Part shown: positions 19,172 to 33,151 of the stretch, in pieces
How positions within the stretch are numbered: position 1 is the stretch's first letter
Layout of the letters: the number at the start of each line of letters is the position of its first letter
Origin: Adineta vaga
Lineage: Eukaryota > Animalia > Rotifera
NCBI GenBank assembly: GCA_021613535.1
Contig: CP075495.1
Span: 13,764,001-13,828,000 of the forward strand
Direction of reading: 5' to 3'
DNA: 64,000 bases
Program-made: the position numbers and the translations under genes
The notes under the pieces: model-generated
What the model saw: only the letters and a program-made list of their open reading frames with translations
What the model was told of the DNA's origin: nothing
Database searches by the model: none

Positions 19172-21034
19172 TTATTTTTTCTTTTTCTTTTTCAATTTCA
19201 ATGCAAATTTAGCTGCTAAGAGAAAATGATCCGATGCAAATTGATGATTTGGTAAATGTAAATTCGACATGTGTTGTTGTTGATATAAATTATATCGACT
19301 TAATAAATTCAATCGAAATCGATCATTATCTTGTTTTGTATAAAAAATATAATCAACTAAATTAAATTCATTATCAATACATGTTGTAACATCTGTTGTA
19401 TCATTTAAATCATAAACTGAATGAAATTGTTTATTATGTGTTAAGATTGCTGATGATCTTTGATTGATATATTGTTCGAAGATGATTGAATTCGTTGTTT
19501 GTGTAGCAGTTTGTTTGGGAAAACAACAATTCGAAGTAACAAATGTTGTGGGAATTAATTCCTTAGATGGAAGTTGAAGAGAAAAACGATTTTGAACAAT
19601 TGATTGAGGAATTTGACCAGATATTTCAATCGAACGAAATGTATCATATTTAATATGTCCATTAATTAAAAATTTTGAAAGTGGTGAATGAGGCTGAGCA
19701 TTGAAATCACCACAAATAATAATTGGATAATAAGAATTTAATGAAGCAGTTCTCAATGCAAATCGATCAATTTCAGCAAGAAAGTATTGTAATTGTGCTA
19801 ATTTAATATCACCACGTTTCGGTGAAAAAAGTAAATGAGTTGTAGCAACACAGAAAAGATCATCGGAGGTCGCTTTTGATGATAATGGTTGAAATAAAGC
19901 AATTAGACCACAATTATCCCTAAAAAGATGAGAATTACATGGATGAAGTGAGATTCTTATTGCAATTACGGAGAGTGTTTTACCTGTCTAAAAGTGAGAT
20001 ATTTCTTTGATAGAATGGTACTGTTTTGCTATCGATTAGTTTCAATCGATCGGTTCGATAGAATAAACAACATCCATCGGATTTATCACCGGAACGTTTG
20101 ATATAAATTGAATCGTATCCTTTAATGCAGAAAGAATCGAAATCAATTCATGTATAATTAATTTCTTACTTACCATAATCAATCATTTTTGGTCGAAAAT
20201 CATATTTGTAATGTTCTCTTTGCATTTCTTGTAAACAAATGATCTAGTAATAAGGATAATTCATTTTTTCGTAATAATTTAAAAAAAAAACACCTACATC
20301 AGCATCTTGTTTTAGCAATTCTCTTAATAATCGTTCTTTTCGTCGATGCCAATGAAGATTACTGTCGAGACAATCTTCATATAAAACTGGATTATCTTCA
20401 ATTAATTTTTGTGCAAGAATATTATAACTGATCAGATGAAAATTAAAATGATGATAACGACTTTTAGTTAAATGTTCGTCGTAAATTGTATTCGACCATG
20501 TTCTTTTTGGTAAATTAAACTCCACTAGGAAAAATTAGCGTGGTTTTTAGTTGAATAAAAACATTGAAACTTACTTGGTGAATATCTCTCACGTTTGTGA
20601 GGAATTTCTACAGGTGACTGTAAATCTCGTGATCGTTTAGGCATTGATATAGTTTGTGATTGATCGAGAAAATAGATTCGATCTATTGATAATGAATTTG
20701 TTTGTTGAGAAAATGGTAGAAGTGGAAGTGCTTGATGTTGTTCAAACCACGAATCCCAATTTTCACTTGTTTGATCGTCTTCAACTTCTTCTGTTTTTAG
20801 TTTCGATTGACGAAAACGTGAGCTCCAATGTAGACGTGGTTCACGTGGTTGATGTGTTAATTTCCATGAATAAAGATTAATTAGGAAATAAGTAATAGGT
20901 GATTGGCTTTTGCTAGGATGAAATTGCCGAGTATTGGGTAAGATTGAAGAAGAGGAAAGTAAACAACGGGTTAAATATTGGGAAGAAGAAGAAGAAGAAG
21001 AATAAATATTAAACCGAGCGAGTGAGGTGAGCAT
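19172..21034 (-). CDS. ANGEL: Angel homolog (EEP/CCR4-family 2',3'-cyclic phosphatase-like)
   Basis: Motifs ISYNILAQKLI, ICLQE, DGCCLFY, DNCGLIALF, VATTHLLFSPKRGDIKLAQL, IIICGDFNAQP, VDYIFY and ASDHFLL. Likely ATG at 21034 (MLTSLARF). Confidence 0.92.
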
Positions 21035-21971
21035 AGACCATGAGATTGTCAAACAAATTTCAAATGAAATTATATATTTCTTATAATCTGGAAGATAGTT
21101 GTTAGTATCGTATTTTTTAGAATATTTTTGACTCGCGACATTCACATTATTCGCCAATTGGTCTAAAATATTAACAAATCATGTAATTCCTACTCTAATT
21201 GCACCACTAAACAGTCGTTTGATATATACGTAAGGATCGTCGTTAGCAATCATAAACAAAAACATTTTTCAAACACTTGTCAATTTCTCTTTTCGAAGTA
21301 TCTATGAAATACAAATAACATATTCTCTTAGTCTTAATTAGTATAAGACTTCGATGTGTTAAATGACATTAATTATCTATTTATATGTAGTAATGACTAG
21401 AATTACATCCGATTTGTTAATGCTTTAGTCAAAATAGTTTTGAATAGAAATTCTCTAGCAAGAATACACTTGCCTTCTCTAAAATGGACTATTTTATGAT
21501 CTTTATCAATCCTTGCTGTTTTATTAAGAACAATCAGATTGCTTTATTGCTCACCAAACTATTTCAAGTATGTGAAAATATCTGTTTTACTAGTTTGAAT
21601 ATAGAGTTGAAGACATAACTGTTAGTGACTCAGTTGTATGTGGAAGAGATAATGTGATGAAATTACGTTATCAGTTGATCATATATAATATTACTTCTTT
21701 TAAATATAATCGAGAACTATTTTATACACAGATTTACATCTCTATTAAACGTCTTTGATAACTAACCATTATTAAATATAGTTGTTTCTCAAATGATTAA
21801 CATCAAATCGTCTAAAAAGATCAGTTTTTTGCTAGAACACTGATTGTATTATTCTATATACATAACATAATACCAAGTGCTTTTCTGTTTTTAGATCAAA
21901 TCAGAAAAATCATCGTTTATTCAGTTTTAGTCTATGTCATTGATAAATGTCTTCAAATAATTAAATAAACG

Positions 21972-24506
21972 ATGAGTATCGCTTCAGTTGATGAACATTC
22001 TTCCATCCTACGAAAACAGAGTGCTGATGTTACCTCTGAACAACTGAAAATATCATTTGATGTATTTGTTTCAGTTTTAAAAGAAACGAACGAGTACGAT
22101 ACAAGATATACCATATATGAACAAATCTGTTCTCCGTTAATCAATTTACCATATAAAACAAACAAATTCAGTGATTCTGAACTGATCGAACATGAATTAT
22201 TTATTATTTTACGTGATGATGTAATCATCGAGCAATTTCGTCAAAGAGAATCTGAAACTGGTACAACAAGAAAACAGGTACAATTAATCTCAATGCTATT
22301 TATGAATCTTAGTCACAAAATAACTGAAGATAATATCGTTGGATTTCATAATCTTCTTTTTCATCAACCATTGATTAATGAACTAGCGAATTGTCTTCAT
22401 GAAATTGGTACGTACGGTAAATATTTTAACAATTTTATACTTTTTCGTTCAATTAAATTCTTACTATGCGCTTTTAAAAATTATCTAAGACACAAATTAA
22501 TTGGTGATGAATATACATTACTTACATCAATATTGTTCTCTGCTATTCAATGTTTATGTTCATCATATGCTGTTGATATGATAAAACAGTTAAAATTCAA
22601 TTTTACTCAAAAATTAAATGATTGTCAAACATTATTTCTTGATACATTACCATTCTATTTACAATGGTATCCGGAATATCAAAAGCCGGAAAATTTTATT
22701 GGAATTTTACGAACTCTATTGAATGAATTTACGAATTGGATAACAAACTGTTCACCCCAATCATATATCGATTGTACGAGTCATATTGGACGAATGATTC
22801 GACATTTAAATTATTTTCTTGTTCGTCCTATTGAATCCGAAAACGTACATTTATTTAGTGATGAATTTTACCATGACTATTGTAAATTAGTTGCGTATTG
22901 GTCGTTAGTTTTGTCAACAATATTGCCATGTTTTCCCGATCAACCAAATGTCAAGGACAGTACACGAATCATTATTAAAAATTTGTATAATTTCACACTG
23001 CATTTAAACGTTTTAAACTACATGAAAACTATACCAAATTTGATTCCTATGCTTTTGCAAACGACTGATATTGAAGATGATGAAATACAAGTAAATGCTT
23101 ATCGTTGTTTAGGCAAAATTATGACTGAAGCAGACATAAAAGCAATGACAAATCCAAGTAAAATTGCTAGTGTATATATTGATTTTATTACAAATACGAT
23201 TGATGATCAATATCAAAAAGAACGATTTCATAGTCTTTTAAAAAGTTTAAAAAGTAAATCTTAATTATTTAGTATAAAAGAAAATTTATTTGGCATTTTC
23301 TTTCTCTTTTAGATTTTGTACAACATGATCAAGTAAAAACAGAGTTAATTGAATTAAAAGCACTTCCACTTCTAGTCAAATGTGTAGTCGAAACTCAATT
23401 TGATCCAATTAAAGTTCAGCAAACATCTTTAGAAATTCTTCTTGCTCTTTCATTTAATACAGACGCTTGTTCTTTTCTAAGACAAAATTCAAATTTTATC
23501 AATCATATTCGAACACTCGTCCTTAATACACTACCAGATAAATCAGGTTTACAACGAGCTGCTGAAGGTCTTCTTTGGAAATTAGAAGAAGAAGAAAAAG
23601 CTGTTGCTAAACCATCGATTTTAAATTTGTATAAATATGATGTTATGATAAGTTATTCACATAAAGATCAAGAAATATGTCTTCAAATTCATGAACAACT
23701 AGTCAAAGATGGATTTCAAGTATGGTTCGACAGAGATTGTTTACGTGGATCAACTATGGTTGGTATTGCAAATGCTATAGAAAATTCCAAACATGTACTT
23801 ATTTGTATGTCAAATACATATAAACAAAGTGTTTACTGTCATTCCGAAGCACATTATGCATTTGAACGAGGATGTCGTTTAATTCCAATTATTATAGAAC
23901 CAAATTATAAACCAGATGGTTGGCTTGGAATCATTGTTAGCGGAAAGATCTATGTAGAATTTGGTAATGTGGAATTTTCTTTTGCTTATGAAAGATTAAA
24001 GAATGAAATTATGCAACAAGAATATCACGATCCTACTTCGTCACCATTAAAAATAGAAGAAAAAGATCACACTGATACAATATTTACATATTCCGAAGGG
24101 GCAGACACATTCTATCAACCAACTCTGTAAGTTCATTTGATGCATCATTGTACACAAAATTGTCTTTGTATTTATTAGTGATCTACCTAATTGTATTACT
24201 GAATGGACTTGTGAACATGTGAAATCATTTTTTCTACGAAATGGATTGGCAAATACACTTCTTTTCCTCTTTCCACATACAGATGGTCATCGTCTTCAAC
24301 AATTATATGAAATATGTCTTCTAAATCGCGAATCAATGTATCAATCATTGAAATTTGAACTGAATGAACGATATCATATATTACTACCAATTTCTGATTA
24401 TCTCAATTTTCTTCATGAAATCAAAGCATATATTTCGACCAGTCCAACAAATACAAGAACTACACAGTATTCTTTTCTTTCCCTTACGTTTTGTAATCTT
24501 TTGTAG
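21972..24506 (+). CDS. Helical (ARM/HEAT-like) repeat + TIR + C-terminal SAM-like domain protein
   Basis: Exons about 21972-23253, 23313-24126 and 24179-24506. ARM-like LIPMLL...IQVNAYRCLGKI and LQRAAEGLLWKL; TIR YDVMISYSHKD...VWFD...AIENS...YCHSEAHYA...LIPII; SAM-like ITEWTCEHVKSFF...DGHRL. Confidence 0.88.
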
Positions 24507-24940
24507 AAAAAGAAAAGAGAGAGAGAGAGAAAAGTATTTAAAATGGTAACAGATGATATACTTTTGGGAATGTATTTTTGTTTTTTTTCTAAATATAACT
24601 ATTCACAGATTTCAAGTTTTAAAACCAAGCACTAGTTGCAATTTTACACTATAGATACATCCGATAAAATTAAGTCGAATATGGTTTATATACATATTTA
24701 CTACTGAATGATGGTGACCTCTTTCGTGCTTTCAACGGTTATACTGACATGATGAAATTACCAGCCAATTGATATGTTAATAATTGCATACACTACACAC
24801 AACATACACTCACATTTTTCTATTTCGATTACATTTGATTTTATTTGTAACGTTTGTTGAAAAACAATAAAAATCGGAGAAGTACTTTTTTCCTAAGTAC
24901 AATTATTTATAGAATTTAATTTTTCACATTTTCTTTAAGA

Positions 24941-25762
24941 ATGACTGATTATGTTGAAGAATCATTTACAGTAATTACACCACGTCACAACCATAAACTA
25001 TCATGTATTTTTCATCGAAAACGTTCCCCTTATATTGATGATCAAAATCGTGAACATGTTGTTATTCTCTGTCATGGTTATTTGGCGACTAAAAATAGTG
25101 CTTTCCTTCCACAATTAGCTCGTGATATATCCGATTCAACGATGAACCAATTTCATTCAGTACGTTTTGATTTTCATGGTTGTGGAGAATCAACTGGACG
25201 CGAAGAATGGAATTACGGAGGATATGAAGATGAAGCGAAAGATGATCTTAGATCAATTGTTGAATATTTACGCAATGAAAAGAAGCAATATTTTGTTCGA
25301 GCACTTCTAGGACATTCACGAGCGGGAACAACTGTTTTACTTTATGCATTGTATTTTGATGATGTACCAATTATTATTAATGTAGCAGGTCGATATCGAC
25401 TCGAACGTGGTATCTACGAACGATTTTCTCAAAAACAATTAGATGAATTAAATAAAAATGGTTCATTTTTAATTCATACTTCAGATCAGGGAGATTTTCG
25501 TATTACAAAAGAAGCAATTGAACGTCGGAAAAGTTTGAATATGGATGAACTAGAAAAAATTCGTCATGCTCGTGTATTAAATATATGGGGTGATCAGGAT
25601 AATGTTATGCCGGGTGATGAAATCTATTTATATAATGATCAATTAAAAAATACGAAAAAAACCGAAATGGTCATTGTGTCTGATGCTGATCATTGTTTTC
25701 AAGGCACAGAAAAGGCTTTATTTAAAATTATTAGACCTTGGATTGAACAGTCCATTGAATAA
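24941..25762 (+). CDS. Intronless alpha/beta-fold hydrolase (esterase-like)
   Basis: VILCHG oxyanion motif, RFDFHGCGES, nucleophile elbow GHSRAG, Asp in WGDQD and His in DADHCF, all in a single 273-aa ORF. Confidence 0.93.
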   Translation: MTDYVEESFTVITPRHNHKLSCIFHRKRSPYIDDQNREHVVILCHGYLATKNSAFLPQLARDISDSTMNQFHSVRFDFHGCGESTGREEWNYGGYEDEAKDDLRSIVEYLRNEKKQYFVRALLGHSRAGTTVLLYALYFDDVPIIINVAGRYRLERGIYERFSQKQLDELNKNGSFLIHTSDQGDFRITKEAIERRKSLNMDELEKIRHARVLNIWGDQDNVMPGDEIYLYNDQLKNTKKTEMVIVSDADHCFQGTEKALFKIIRPWIEQSIE

Positions 25763-25803
25763 AATATCTACAATTCTTTCATCTGTTTTAGATAATAATA
25801 AAA

Positions 25804-27487
25804 ATGGATGTACAAACAAACGCAGAAAGCATCACAACAACCAGTGGAGATAGTAATAATAATAATTTTAGTTCTTCACAATATTCGCCCAGTAATACAT
25901 CATCCGCATCGCCATATGTAGGAACTTATCAAGTTGATATATCATCGACTACTTTCGATCTTGAATCAATCACATCATCCTATACTGGATTAATGTGTAT
26001 TTATCGTTTATTATATGTAGCTGAACATTGTCAGACATTACGTAATGAAGCTTTATTAGCAAGTTTAAAATATTTACAAGGCACACATTTTACTACTCTG
26101 TATAAACAAGTATATGAGAAAATCTTGAATCATTGTATTTTTCTGAACTGTATATGTTGTTGTTGTTGTATTTAGATTCTGGATGAACTCAAAAAACAAG
26201 ATATTCCATTATCAAATGATTTTGATATGGGATGGTTTGAACGAACACAACGTGCTTATGTTCAAAAATTAGAAAAACTTGATACTGATTTACGAAATTT
26301 TCGTACAAACTCAATTAAAGATTCCATTCGTCGAGGTCATGATGATCTTGGTGATCATTATTTAGATGCGGGAGATTTTTTTAATGCAGTTCGTTGTTAT
26401 GTACGTTCAAGAGATTATTGTGTTTCACCAAGACATATGATTACAATGTGTATGAATGTTATTAAAGCATCATTTTTTATGCAAAACTGGTCGAATGTTT
26501 TATCATATATTAGTAAAGCTGAACAAGCTATTGAAAGTTTAGAAACAACAGCAAAAACAACTATAACATCATCGATGAATAATCCAATGGCAGGTGCAAC
26601 GACTTCGTCAACAGATATACCTGATGTAGTATTAGTTTCACGTTTGAAAGTTTATGCAGGTATTGCTGAATTAGCTACTGGAAGATATAAATTAGCTGCA
26701 CGACATTTTCTTGGTGTATCATTTGATCATTGTTCAAATTATTTTCAAGTAAAATTAATTTTTCGATACAAAAATCTCTCCTATTCAACTGTTTTCTCTA
26801 TAGGATCTTCTTTCACCACAAACACTTATTCAATATGTTTGTTTATGTAGTTTAGCAACATTTGAACGATCAGAAATTCATCGTTTAATAATTATGTCAA
26901 CAAATATGAAACAATATCTTGAGTTAGAACCATCAATTCGTGAAATACTTTTGAAATTTTATGAAACATCCTATTCATCTTCATTAGCTATTATGTCCCA
27001 ACAAGAACCCATTTTTGCATTAGATCAATTTCTTGCCCCACATTTACGTTCATTATATTACGAAATTCGTCATCGTATTGTTATCACTTATTTTCTTCCA
27101 TATAAAAATGCGAGTATGATAACAATGGCTAAACAATTAAATACAACCATCGATGTGCTCGAAGATGAACTTGTTCATTTAATTCGTTTAGGAAAAATTA
27201 AAGCACGCATTGATTCAAAAGATAAAATTTTATATGCTGATGATACGGATCAACGCTGGTATGCATATCAACATGCGTTAACAATAACAAAACAATCGGA
27301 AAAAATAACACGTGCATTTTTACTTCGTTCAGCGGTTATCAAAGCAAATTTAGCCGTTAGAGATGATTCAGCACTAATATCAGGTCGTTCTGGAAATAAT
27401 AAGAATAAATCTCGTGGACATTTCGTACCAGAAATGGATGGTCATATGATGATTGATGATACATATTATGATGATAGACGAATGTAA
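25804..27487 (+). CDS. GPS1: COP9 signalosome subunit 1
   Basis: YTGLMCIYRLLYVAEHC, KLEKLDTDLRNFRTNSIKDSIRRGHDDLGDHYLDAGD, YVRSRDYC, and PCI end LIRLGKIKARIDS. Introns about 26110-26175 and 26749-26802. Confidence 0.96.
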
Positions 27488-27734
27488 AATAATTTCGTCT
27501 TTAGTGAAATCAGAAAAACATGAAAACTTTTATACTATTTTTTTACTTCTTTTCTTTGCGTTCTTTAACCGATGATTAAGTTAATATCAATGAAAAATCC
27601 TATTTTGTTCCTTTTGTTTTGTAGTTTTACAATTTATTCAAGAAATTTTGTTTTCTTTTTAATAATTCTTATTATTTATGAAGAAGAAAACGTCTTTTTG
27701 TGATAATTGAATCAAAATAAATACTTTCTTTCAG

Positions 27735-30700
27735 ATGTCGACAACGAAAAAAAGAAAAGCCGGTGAAGACAATAATCAATTATCTTCGAAATCACCAAGT
27801 AAAAGTAAGTTTTGATTTTCTCTAATTGACATAGGATCTATTTGTATAATGAGAGCTCTAACTTAGTGAAATTTGCAATCAATTTTAAAAATATAGAAAA
27901 GAGAACCATTAGAATTACTTTTAATAGATTGAAAATCATATGGTCATTTTTGAATTTTGATTGTGATGATTATTTGTTATATAGAAAATCGTCCATCGGT
28001 GGATAAACACTCAAATGTCGTAGAAAAATCGAATAGTACAATCTTTCAACAACAGTACTCATCACTTTCATATCCAAATATATCTTCATCATTGGATACT
28101 TCAAATACGTGGAGTCCATCAACTTCTTCAAAAATGGATTATACCAATAATCAATTGACTACGACGACAACCCCACATGCTTTATCGATGATCTATAATT
28201 CCAATCACCAACAAACAAACGAGACAGGTTCTGAATTAAAACCAGAATTGTCATCACCAATAAATGGTACACAGACACCGAAGAAAAAAGGTAAAAGTGA
28301 AAAATCATCTGTATTCGCAACACCTCCACCATCTACTGGCAATACAATTGCAATTGCGAAAATGATGGTAATTAATCTTTTATATTCGATTATATGTACA
28401 AGATGAAATCTATTGATTTGATTTTTAGCAAAAAATGGGTTACGATGAAAAACGTGGTCTTGGTGCTAATCCTCAAGCTCCAACAAAATTAATTGAAGAA
28501 AGTAAACAAAAGGGTCGTCGTGGTCTTGGCTTTTCATTCAAAGAATTTAATGATGATTCAGCTGAATGGGATTTTGATATTGATCCAGTAAGTATATCCA
28601 TGCATAGTTTATTTCATTTATCATTTCCATTGTTCTATTTGTTGTTTAGGCTCCTATTGAAGAAGAAGTTCATTGGTGTCCACATAATGAACAAATGGAA
28701 AGTCCTTTGGATCTCGACGAAATGCGTCAATGGATTCAACTTGGACCAGTATGTGCCAAGATGTTCATAGAAAAAAAATGTTTAACACACATTGTATCTT
28801 AATTCTAGAAAAAGAGAATCATTGATGATGAAACTGAATTTTGTGATGAACAAATTCTTCAAGATATGTTGAATGGAAAAGTACATAGTTCTTATTAATA
28901 CAAAAAATTAGTTCATAATTAATTGATCTTTCATTTTAGACTGTATTCGATGAATTACCACAAAAAGAAATGGAAGAATCACGTGCACGTAGTAATGTTT
29001 ATGAAACTATTGGACAATCAATTTTTCTCAATCGGTAGAGAAATGAAATGATATTTGAACGTATTTAATTCTATTTTTTCGTTCATTTTAGAGCGGCTGT
29101 TAAAATGGCAAATATCGACTCTGTTTTTGATCGAATATTTAGTGATCCTCGAACACCAGATAATCAAGTAAGTCAACTTCTAGTTATCTTTTGTTGCATC
29201 AACACGCTCTTTTTTTAGCAATCATTGGTTTATTCGGATGAACCTCTTTATTTTGCGGACATTTGTGCTGGTCCCGGTGGTTTCAGTGAATATATTTTAT
29301 GGAAAAAACAATGGCGTGCACGAGGTATTCTAAAATGATCTTCTTGATTATTGTACATGATCTCGTTGTTTTTATCGACAAGGTTTTGGTTTTACATTAA
29401 AAGGCGATTGTGATTTTAAGCTAGGTAAATTTCTTGCTGGTACGCCTGAAACATTCGATACATATTATGGTGTTCATGATCTTAATGGTGATGGAGATAT
29501 CTTTAAATCGGAAAATATTGATGCTCTACAAAATTATGTAAATAAATGTACAATGCATCGTGGTGTACATATTGTAATGGCTGATGGAGTAAGATTTAAA
29601 TGGAGAATAGACAATAAAAATTATCATTGACTTGTCAATTGTAGGGATTTTCTGTTGAAGGACAAGAAAATATTCAAGAAATTCTAAGTAAACAATTGTA
29701 TCTATGTCAATTCTTAACGGCTTTGACAATACTTCGACCAGGTATGAAAGAAAGTTTTCTTTAACTATTGAATATGATATATCTTCTATTTGTTTTTATT
29801 TAGGTGGTCATTTTGTTTGTAAATTATTTGATGTATTTACGCCATTCAGTGTGGGTCTTGTTTATTTAATGTATCGAACATTTCATCATATATCTTTACA
29901 CAAACCAGTTACTAGTCGACCTGCAAATTCAGAACGGTATGAAAATGATTTGATTAAGATTCAATAATAATACGATGTTTTCTTCTATTTCTTGCCAGAT
30001 ATATTATTTGTAAAGGTCTCCGTGGTGATATTCGAGATATTGTTCGTCCGTATATGTATGAAATCAATATATTACAAAATCGTTATTCTCAAGATTCTGA
30101 ACTCGAAGATGTGCAATCTATTGTTCCATTGGATATGTTAAAAGGAAACGAAACGTTCTATGAATATATTCAAAATTCAAATGATCAGTAAGAGAGTATT
30201 TATTGATAGATTGAACAATGTTTTGAAATTCATCTAGAATGGGTTTACATCAAATAAGAAATTTGAAAAAAATCCGTGCTTTTGTTAGTAATTCATCGTT
30301 AAAAGACATTCGACAACATGAAATTCGTACACGATGTCTCCAATATTGGCAGGTAAATAATTGCTTTATATGCATTCTTAAACAAAAAGAAAACCTAATA
30401 ATTTCACTTCGATTTAAAGTTACCAGATGAGCCCCGACAAAAATTTCGACGATTAATGTATGATGATGTACAACGTGATCTTTTCTATAAAGTAATTCAC
30501 TTTTTTGTATTGCATAAACTATTTCTAACCTAATTTCTTTTATTTAGCTTGGTCATGGTATTGATAGTTTTCTCTTAAATATACCAACTAGTTTGAAAAA
30601 TTCCATTCTTACACAGCATCGTATACAATCTTTATTTGATTATCGATGTGTACTATCAATAGGTGAACCTATTCTAATTTTATCCTGTGGTGTAAGTTTG

Positions 30701-31798
30701 ATAGATATGTACTAATCTTCTTTTCATATATATCAGCGGTTTTACTCTTCTAGCGAAGTTCTGTTTACATTTGGGAATTAAAATCGAGAAATAAAGGATG
30801 GACATCATTGGAACGTACACAGTTTAAAATCGAATTACCACCGTATACATTATTACTTGGTGAACGTGTACAAGAACATTTACAAGATGTATAAGAATAA
30901 ATCATTCTTTCTTCTCTGTTCTGTAATTTGATAGTTTAAATGAACTATTTTAGAGTCGAAATAATCGGCTGCGATCAGTGATTTATGTCATTGATGCATA
31001 TTTTATTGGAAATGAAAATATGCTTTTGCAAAATGGCAAACCAGCTGTTTTTATGGATCGGTATTAGTCGTAATTTCGAGTGCATTTCATTGAATTAGTT
31101 TTCTTTTTTGTTGTACAGTTATCGTGAATTGAAACTATTTGAAAAAGCAATCAATAAACCAGCTCGTACTGATCTTTCAACTATTCGAATTAGTGAACAA
31201 TTACGTTTAGAACAAATGGATGTTCAATTTGAAAAGTACGTTTTATTAATGTGAGTGATCGAAGAGATGAACAATTTATTATTTAGATTATGTCTTTCTG
31301 GTAATCTACAACAAATTGATACAGAAAAATTATGGTTTACAAATACAGATATTGAAAGTAAACCACGTGTAGGAGTTTGTGGTTTGTGGATATTCAAATT
31401 TGTACAATGTAAGAATTGATTGATTACTTTTGTCTTTTCAAGAGGATTTATTTCTATGTTGTTGATTTAGATCCATGGACAATTCTATTAAGTAAATCAA
31501 GACAACAGAAATACTTTCATAATCAAAAGGATCGAACATCTATCGAAGGGGCTCCAGGTGATGGTGCTCATGTCGCTTCCATACGGTAATAGATCAATTC
31601 ATTTATTAAATTAATCCTATGAAATTCCAAAATATCTTTTCTAGATCAATGCTTGAAAACAGTTTCTATTGGGATTTCAGTAATCGTGATGATGCACTAC
31701 GCAAATCAACTTTTATTTCATTTATTCAACAGAAAAATCATGAAGCACAATTACAACAACGTATTACCCATCCTCCTTCTACAACTGCTCATCATTGA
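27735..31798 (+). CDS. CMTR1: Cap-specific mRNA 2'-O-methyltransferase 1 (G-patch, RrmJ-type MTase, GTase-like, WW); many short exons
   Basis: G-patch [11 protein letters not shown]...KGRRGLGF; [67 protein letters not shown]; WW-like [18 protein letters not shown]. Stop at 31796-31798. Confidence 0.95.
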
Positions 31799-32232
31799 AG
31801 AAAGCTAACTCATATGTTATCTCGCTTCTTTTTTTGTTTTAGCTAAATTGAAGAGACAAAATCTTTGTTCTTTCTGAATATTATTTCCTTGTGTTATAAT
31901 ATCTAATTTTTTTGTTTGTTTCATTTTATCAAACGAGACTAGAAGAAAAGAGATACAAACGAAATCCTTTCTGTGTGTTTTACCAAAGAAATGGAACATT
32001 GTTGCATGAAAGAAAAAGGGTTTTTTGTGCGAGTGTATACAAGTGTGTTTAGTTCAACTGAATTCGTTTCGTTTTCTTTATAAAGAAAAAAACAAAGCAA
32101 ACACATAAGTCATGTATTTTTTTCTAAATAAGACTTTTCTACTAGAATTTAATAAGAAACGACATCGTAGCGGTTAAATTTATTCGTACAAGACAGAAAA
32201 GAAAACATTGCTACAGTATATGTTTGCTTGAT

Positions 32233-33151
32233 TTATTTACAATAACGATCAGATTTCATTTTTTCACGTCGATCAAGCAAAGTTTCATGTAATAAACCTG
32301 ATTTTTTCGCATCAACTAAATCTTTGACATCACCTTGATTAATACGTAACTTTTTATCTTGAAATTTTTGAAATTTTTTCACATAATTTAATTCCGTTTC
32401 ACGAATTGAACCTTGTTCTTCAACGGGCAATTCTTTTTGTCGTTTTTCTTTCTCATGAATACGTTTAGAATTTGAACGTATATTAATAAAATTCGCTTCG
32501 GTAGCACTATCATCCATTGCTACAAGATCACCTTCTTCATTAAAACGAATAAATTTATCATTACATGCTGATAATGCCAAATTTCCATTTTCAAAAACAG
32601 GTTCAAAATATTCACGCATTCCAATAGCATCTAAAAGTTTTCAATCAACATTTTCTTCATTATTCTCAATTATTCTTACCTGATCGACCGATAACTAATC
32701 CATTTTTATTAATAGCTAAATATTTACCAAAACCAGATTTGAATGCAACTTTATTTTCTGATATACGTATTGCTGTTAGAATTTGTTGCTGATCAGGTCC
32801 TTCACCAAATGGTCGTGTTGGGCCAACACAAAACAAACCGTTGTCTAGCGTATGAGCATAACTATTTGTACCAAACTCAATAGCAACATTGCCAGTAATC
32901 TCATGAAATTTTGATACTTTCCACCAGCCACCATGTCTAAAAAATCATCAACGTTTTTCCTTATGGAAAAAAGAACAATGATAAACTTACTGAACATAAT
33001 CTTGTTCTCCGTCGTCTTCATCATTGTCAATAGTAGGTTTCTGTTTTTTTGAAGATGACGATGATGATGAATGTTTTTTTCGTTTCTTCGAACTCGATGC
33101 ATCATCAGCGGCACCTTTTAAATTCAATTTTCCTCCGCGAACTGCATACAT
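32233..33151 (-). CDS. FRG1: FRG1 (FSHD region gene 1) homolog
   Basis: MYAVRGGKLNLKG...HGGWW...VAFKSGFGKYL...GRSDAIGMRE and C-terminal YVKKFQKFQDKKLR...LHETLLDRREKMKSDRYCK. Confidence 0.96.

Follow-up and report, generated by a model that had tools for sequence, protein, structure and literature searches.

How are three genes on one strand expressed as separate mRNAs when only 41 nt lie between the first two coding sequences (CDSs) and 247 nt between the last two? The question is raised by a 64,000-nt stretch of DNA from the bdelloid rotifer Adineta vaga (positions 13,764,001 to 13,828,000 of CP075495.1, assembly GCA_021613535.1), here called the window, which sits on contig 2 of the 100.8-Mb, six-contig assembly and has a GC content of 30% across its length. 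On its + strand, an alpha/beta hydrolase gene, the gene of COP9 signalosome subunit 1 (CSN1), and the gene of cap 2'-O-ribose methyltransferase 1 (CMTR1) follow one another in this order. The initial annotation of the locus proposed an operon whose three genes are all trans-spliced to a spliced leader (SL). SL sequence and its acceptors are found at CSN1 and CMTR1, but the hydrolase acceptor is used in cis. Together with a CSN1 poly(A) tail at the CMTR1 acceptor, RNA that reads across the hydrolase/CSN1 junction, and conservation in ten taxa, these observations make it probable, though well short of certain, that the trio is an SL-resolved operon of the kind known from Ciona, driven from upstream of the hydrolase gene. 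The three CDSs are as follows.

24941-25762, + strand: alpha/beta hydrolase CDS, an open reading frame (ORF) of 273 aa in a single coding exon, with its ATG at 24941 and its stop codon TAA at 25760-62; first cistron
25804-26109, 26176-26748, and 26804-27487, + strand: exons of the CSN1 CDS, with its ATG at 25804 and its stop codon at 27485-87; second cistron
27735-31798, + strand: CMTR1 CDS, with many short introns; third cistron

Judged from protein searches made with single exons one by one, not with a joined spliced model, the identities of the three genes hold. The hydrolase matches the Abhydrolase_1 domain (E value of 1.4e-16). CSN1 contains RPN7 (3.8e-41) and PCI (1.3e-16) domains, and its best solved relatives are all COP9 signalosome subunit 1 (4e-52). 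For CMTR1, G-patch and FtsJ domains are matched, each on single exons, and the best solved relative of one 69-aa exon is cap 2'-O-methyltransferase 1 (1.3e-15); its orthologues, 934 to 942 aa in length, are annotated with G-patch and FtsJ domains.

Splicing at the three acceptors

A reading of positions 24400-28200 found all the motifs of the initial annotation in place. The sequence ttttctttaAG (AG at 24938-39) precedes the hydrolase ATG, ctttcatctgttttAG with its AG at 25790-91 lies 12 nt ahead of the CSN1 ATG, and AATAAA at 27716-21 lies 11 nt ahead of actttctttcAG, whose AG at 27733-34 abuts the CMTR1 ATG. In a genome of 30% GC, a pyrimidine tract and AG ahead of an ATG say little by themselves, and the sites were examined in RNA from four runs of four studies (X4, X5, X13, and X15), in the form of assembled contigs aligned to 24101-28300. 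All four runs show GT..AG joints and hence represent RNA; contigs merge reads of different molecules, so linkage within a single molecule cannot be proven from them. Both CSN1 introns (26110-26175 and 26749-26803) are supported by RNA joints. CMTR1 exon 1 (27735-27804) is separated from the next exon by intron 1 (27805-27984), with the joint 27804>27985 seen in X15, and the CMTR1 exons past 28300 are inferred from ORFs alone.

RNA confirmed two of the three proposed acceptor sites, those of the downstream cistrons.

25772-25791, + strand: pyrimidine tract and AG acceptor of CSN1, with the SL joined to 25792
27722-27734, + strand: pyrimidine tract and AG acceptor of CMTR1, with the SL joined directly to the ATG at 27735

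An X15 contig that begins at 25790 carries a loose end of nine letters, CTTACCAAG; read on into the AG, it equals the final 11 nt of the SL. A second X15 loose end, ACTTACCAAG, stands before 27733 and, with the AG included, gives the final 12 nt. The chance of an exact in-register match is about 1 in 10^5 to 10^6 for each of these tails, of 9 and 10 letters. Contigs of X4 and X5 share the exact start at 25790, a point at which SL joining should make the assembly graph branch. No cis joint ending at 25792 or 27735 was found in the four runs. Two other X4 contigs have nonmatching ends, neither of them SL sequence: in one, 255 letters or more precede 26152, which lies in CSN1 intron 1 beside a (TGT)n run, and in the other, the 12 letters AGGTCAAGTGAC precede 26285.

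The source of the tails lies elsewhere in the genome. The published rotifer SL is GGCTTATTACAACTTACCAAGAG (PMC3795323, Table 1), and TGCTTATTACAACTTACCAAGAG, which matches it, occurs in 42 copies in the A. vaga genome, with a GTAAAT donor directly 3' of it in each copy read. A search with the whole SL RNA gene returned at least 40 copies of about 106 nt with 90 to 100% identity. The tails of 11 to 12 nt at the locus match the main SL form. Across the whole window, no match to the SL tail was found with one mismatch allowed, meaning that a local cis exon cannot supply it. A few SL RNA gene copies have single-base SL variants, and no distinct SL2-like class was found in the genome, only one SL RNA family of about 106 nt with single-base variants of the exon. 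Most SL RNA genes form head-to-head inverted pairs with their SL exons about 154 nt apart (for example, L001, 1490-1760), and they are concentrated on contig 5 at 9.88-9.93 Mb and 10.91-10.93 Mb.

Could these loose ends be assembly errors or chance matches, with the acceptors joined in cis to upstream exons that were not seen? Each loose end, SL-like or poly(A), is present in one contig and is 9 to 19 letters long, as such an artifact would have it. Against this explanation stand two independent tails, both identical to the SL 3' end and in register with the AG, the lack of any copy of the tail in the window, the lack of cis joints at 25792 and 27735 in the four runs, and the contigs of two other studies that start at exactly 25790. 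We consider an artifact very improbable.

The hydrolase gene behaves differently. SL addition had been predicted at 24940 as well; instead, contigs of three studies join this acceptor in cis to a noncoding exon that ends at 24881, an outcome that the initial annotation had itself named as a refutation for this site.

24792-24881, + strand: noncoding 5' exon of the hydrolase mRNA, joined from 24881 to 24940 in X5, X13, and X15 contigs
24882-24939, + strand: cis-spliced intron of 58 nt in the 5' untranslated region (UTR), GT..AG, with the joint 24881>24940 in X5, X13, and X15

No SL loose end was found at 24940 in the four runs. The acceptor at 24939/40 is thus cis-spliced and not an SL site, making the hydrolase gene the promoter-proximal gene. 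The 5' limit of its exon is uncertain, with contigs beginning at 24653 (X15) or 24792 (X13), and neither position was accepted as a start site: 24792 adjoins a polymorphic indel at 24789/24804 and may be an assembly break, and 24653 coincides with an AG and has one unaligned letter only. This AG (24653-54), 148 nt past the stop codon of the next gene upstream, could be a further, unproven SL acceptor; the candidate site at 24653-24655 is not conserved in other taxa.

The upstream gene (21972-24506, + strand) encodes ARM-like repeats followed by a TIR domain (TIR_2, E value of 3.7e-23). Its 3' UTR in RNA contigs reaches at least 24813, overlapping the promoter-like block of the hydrolase gene described below, and an AATAAA at 24866-71 lies 10 nt ahead of the splice donor of the hydrolase 5' UTR. 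One X5 contig connects this ARM/TIR gene to the hydrolase gene, probably by overlap of the long ARM/TIR 3' UTR with the hydrolase 5' exon.

3' ends and conservation of the junctions

The position of the CSN1 3' end bears most directly on how the cluster is processed.

27488-27735, + strand: 3' UTR of CSN1, the whole gap to CMTR1, with poly(A) added after 27734/35
25758-25763, + strand: AATAAA overlapping the hydrolase stop codon

An X5 contig that spans 26893-27735 ends in ...TTTCAGA followed by 18 A, so that the CSN1 3' UTR fills the 247-nt gap and the tail begins at the CMTR1 acceptor itself (G27734 or A27735). Between the CSN1 poly(A) site and the next SL junction there are 0 to 1 nt and no intercistronic DNA; the initial annotation had pointed to a poly(A) signal next to this acceptor. 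Hydrolase contigs end at 25765 (X5), 25779 (X15), and 25792 (X4); the X4 contig ends at the CSN1 acceptor with no tail shown, which is suggestive of the same coincidence at the hydrolase/CSN1 junction. An X13 contig (24792-24881, 24940-26109, and 26176-26364) is continuous over this junction, containing the spliced 5' exon, the hydrolase CDS, the gap, and the first spliced joint of CSN1.

The DNA around ten hydrolase orthologues was compared across Adineta, Rotaria, and rotifers from metagenomes. The named relatives are Adineta steineri, Rotaria sp. Silwood2, R. magnacalcarata, and R. sordida; the others are an Adineta-like contig (L024), metagenome contigs (L019, L022, and L023, two of them from one sample), and a taxon from Logan (L025-L027). 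The Logan contigs L024-L027 were considered as spliced polycistronic RNA, a reading rejected since they retain introns and are hence DNA. The hydrolase gene is followed immediately by CSN1 on the same strand in all taxa, and CMTR1 comes next wherever the contig extends that far; the trio is kept in ten bdelloid taxa. The gene upstream of the hydrolase gene differs: it is the ARM/TIR gene in Adineta, the only genus with that gene at this position, DAGAT in Rotaria sp., SIR2 in L025, and a divergent gene in L019, L022, and L023.

In ten taxa, the first junction contains a pyrimidine tract that ends in TTT(T/C)AG|AT, 20 to 50 nt past the hydrolase stop codon. The CSN1 ATG is 0 to 3 nt past the acceptor AG in Rotaria, in the metagenome taxa, and in a second A. 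vaga copy of CSN1 (its ohnologue, treated below); in Adineta CSN1, about 15 N-terminal codons have been lost. The second junction measures 163 to 380 nt; in all ten taxa readable there, CMTR1 starts right at its acceptor, YAG|ATGTC, with ATATC in place of ATGTC in one Rotaria sp. (L017). The polyadenylation signals fare otherwise. AATAAA is indeed present at both A. vaga junctions, as had been pointed out, but it is not a conserved feature of either: at the hydrolase stop codon it occurs only in A. vaga, Adineta sp. L024, and L023 and is absent from the seven other taxa, and near the CMTR1 acceptor a canonical or near-canonical hexamer is present in about half of the taxa.

The spacing from stop codon to acceptor, 20 to 50 nt in ten taxa, contrasts with other gaps of 160 to 680 nt; same-strand gaps ahead of the hydrolase gene are 435 to 680 nt long and contain a conserved promoter-like block. 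The constrained spacing, together with the conserved acceptors, is a stronger signal than gene order as far as the DNA comparison goes.

One promoter or several

Where, then, does transcription of the cluster start? The clearest candidate is the block ahead of the hydrolase gene.

24713-24776, + strand: conserved block upstream of the hydrolase gene, candidate cluster promoter, GGTGACCTCTTTC ... CTGACATGATGAAATTACCAGCCAATTGATAT, with CCAAT at 24765-69

Its consensus, GCGACCTCTTTC ... TGACATGATGAAAyTACCAaCCAATTGG, can be aligned in A. vaga, A. steineri, Adineta sp. L024, two Rotaria, and L022 despite their differing upstream neighbors. The block is a putative promoter of the cluster; some RNA contigs include it as transcribed sequence. 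A scan of 24400-27800 for bacterial promoters and terminators gave fewer promoter-like sites than shuffled controls and is irrelevant for a eukaryote.

In the operon that we favor, transcription would start upstream of the hydrolase gene, probably near the CCAAT-containing block. The first cistron would retain its own 5' end, with the 58-nt intron of its 5' UTR removed in cis, and the polymerase would continue through CSN1 and CMTR1. The rotifer SL of about 22 nt would then be trans-spliced at 25791|25792 and 27734|27735, releasing the downstream cistrons. Such a scheme implies a single promoter for all three genes and primary transcripts shared by the hydrolase, CSN1, and CMTR1 mRNAs, and 3'-end formation and trans-splicing would be either coupled or in competition.

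Several points weigh against this reading. The SL tails come from one run (X15) only and are 11 to 12 nt long, and for the poly(A) tail there is only one contig, of run X5. The X13 contig that bridges the hydrolase/CSN1 junction could be nascent or read-through RNA. In the four runs, there is no RNA record over all three genes, and no contig shown connects CSN1 with CMTR1. Because the wider neighborhood (helicase, Exo_endo_phos, and FRG1) is also syntenic in several taxa, conserved gene order carries little weight by itself. Finally, the CSN1 ohnologue and the conserved blocks in the CSN1 3' UTR each lend themselves to a different account.

The CSN1 ohnologue lies on contig 5 at 6274385-6276100 (L014, minus strand) with neither a hydrolase gene nor CMTR1 beside it. 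Its upstream neighbor is a divergent homologue, of the Exo_endo_phos family, of the window gene at 19175-21157. It has lost the second intron, keeps the 15-codon N-terminal extension missing from the window copy, and retains a TTTTAG|ACATG acceptor. No convincing match was found between its upstream region and the hydrolase upstream block, and an operon promoter inherited by the ohnologue was set aside. Lacking an upstream cistron, the ohnologue indicates that CSN1 can run from its own promoter and that SL use alone is no proof of an operon. The three genes may also be viewed as independent, tightly packed units, with the promoters of CSN1 and CMTR1 inside the preceding gene, outrons that overlap the upstream mRNA, and SL addition of the sort that many monocistronic rotifer genes undergo. 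Bdelloid mRNAs commonly receive the SL by trans-splicing, with about 60% of genes cited for A. ricciae (PMC4824033), the ohnologue keeps its acceptor at the ATG, and bridging contigs are no proof of a functional precursor. Independent units meet their main difficulty at the first junction, where only 29 nt separate the hydrolase stop codon from the SL junction, bearing out the argument of the initial annotation that the short gap has no room for a promoter; a CSN1 promoter would need to be in the hydrolase CDS. The 20- to 50-nt spacing held in ten taxa while other gaps range from 160 to 680 nt, and the coincidence of poly(A) site and acceptor at the second junction, also speak against them, and we regard three independent genes as improbable.

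The second junction allows an intermediate arrangement.

27631-27643, 27668-27680, and 27697-27707, + strand: conserved blocks in the CSN1 3' UTR, from a comparison across genera of up to ten taxa

The CSN1 3' UTR is unusually conserved among bdelloid genera, and its blocks consist of AATTTATTCAAGA at 27631-27643, a purine-rich (GAN)n run, and TTTGTGATGAT. Going by their conservation, they could be an internal promoter of CMTR1 or else processing or UTR elements. Known RNAs do not explain them, since an Rfam scan of 24000-32500 returned two subthreshold snoRNA-like matches only. A small ORF in this 3' UTR, suggested by GAT repeats that become GAC in a GC-richer taxon, was discarded, as the frames relative to the neighboring motif differ among taxa.

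Hydrolase and CSN1 might form a dicistron, with CMTR1 expressed mainly from its own promoter within the CSN1 3' UTR; an outron of about 75 to 125 nt would be removed from CMTR1 by SL trans-splicing, and the CSN1 poly(A) site would adjoin the acceptor through gene packing. This accords with blocks that outnumber those upstream of the hydrolase gene and are not found in the 3' flank of the ohnologue, which has no CMTR1 beside it, and with RNA contigs that do not extend through 27488-27735 into CMTR1, one X13 contig ending at 27643. The gap, however, is fully transcribed as CSN1 3' UTR with a tail within 1 nt of the acceptor, a coincidence that independent units do not explain, and the blocks could equally be elements of 3'-end formation, trans-splicing, or UTR regulation. 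A separate CMTR1 promoter is, in our judgment, unlikely, although less so than full independence of the three genes. The three-gene operon read from upstream of the hydrolase gene remains our preferred account.

The first cistron has an unusual distribution. Close homologues of the hydrolase are found only in bdelloid rotifers (58 to 87% identity), the next matches being plant proteins at 30 to 35%. In the degenerate-tetraploid genome, there is no second copy of the hydrolase gene, and none was found for the single CMTR1 exon searched, so an ohnologous operon is not available for comparison. Judging from these matches, the hydrolase gene may have been acquired horizontally and now stands as the first cistron ahead of CSN1. 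One possibility is that a bdelloid-only, perhaps foreign hydrolase gene was inserted between a promoter and CSN1, with CSN1 expression preserved by SL trans-splicing; newly acquired genes may in this way be slotted ahead of essential genes without silencing them.

Comparison with known operon systems

SL trans-splicing in rotifers has been known since 2005. In the literature that could be searched, rotifer operons are given as "ND" in a table of one study (PMC2481426) and as "not reported" in another (PMC7986045), and a 2025 chaetognath genome paper touches rotifers only in passing (PMC12460157). With two SL-bearing cistrons, a tail at the acceptor, and conservation across genera, rotifer operons become directly testable. 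We see an about even chance that bdelloids have genuine Ciona-type operons with zero intercistronic DNA, the first for Rotifera and older than the split between Adineta and Rotaria. Such operons would bear on whether operons originated in Gnathifera once, together with those of chaetognaths, or several times, and would provide a second animal system in which 3'-end formation and trans-splicing share one site. They also affect bdelloid genome annotation, since tiny gaps and 5' UTRs made of the SL alone are easily mismodeled.

Like the SL2-type operons of Caenorhabditis elegans and the operons of Oikopleura, the locus is a same-strand cluster resolved by SL trans-splicing. In SL2-type operons, which use SL2, poly(A) site and acceptor are about 100 nt apart, across an intercistronic region with a U-rich element, and in Oikopleura they are 23 to 30 nt apart, in contrast to the 0 to 1 nt between CSN1 and CMTR1; with a poly(A) site at the acceptor and no SL2-like gene class found, the rotifer locus does not fit the SL2 type. 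The rare SL1-type operons of C. elegans are closer, as their poly(A) site adjoins the trans-splice site, with no intercistronic region and no specialized SL (PMC1488885 and PMC7986045). They are, however, a minor class beside the SL2 type, and the rotifer genome yielded no SL2-like class.

Of the phyla for which operons have been described, the chaetognaths, also members of Gnathifera, are the nearest (Marletaz 2008, PMC2481426; Paraspadella gotoi, PMC12460157). About 18% of their genes are in SL-resolved operons enriched in proteasome, ubiquitin, and housekeeping functions, and no operon-specific SL is used, which appears to resemble the situation here; unlike the present locus, chaetognath operons were defined by gaps of <250 bp and SL reads.

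The closest likeness is to Ciona intestinalis (Satou et al. 2006, PMC1488885), where the mRNA upstream of an operon boundary has its end, "...AG + poly(A)", precisely at the acceptor of the downstream gene, and where the absence of intercistronic DNA has been argued to force transcription across the boundary. One SL family serves operon and nonoperon genes in Ciona, and the rotifer genome likewise yielded one family, which may serve both. As at the rotifer locus, the first cistron of a Ciona operon is not necessarily trans-spliced although the downstream cistrons are, the members are functionally unrelated housekeeping genes, and AAUAAA is often missing near the boundary, comparable to its absence from the first junction in seven of the ten rotifer taxa. 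There are differences as well: the two animals belong to different phyla and their SL sequences are unrelated, A. vaga has AATAAA at both junctions, the rotifer first cistron carries a cis-spliced intron in its 5' UTR, and polycistronic precursor cDNAs are known for Ciona while the rotifer locus is known from contigs. By analogy, the trans-spliced downstream cistrons, the tail at the acceptor AG, the absence of intercistronic DNA, and the single SL family appear to fit the pattern by which operons are recognized in Ciona (PMC1488885).

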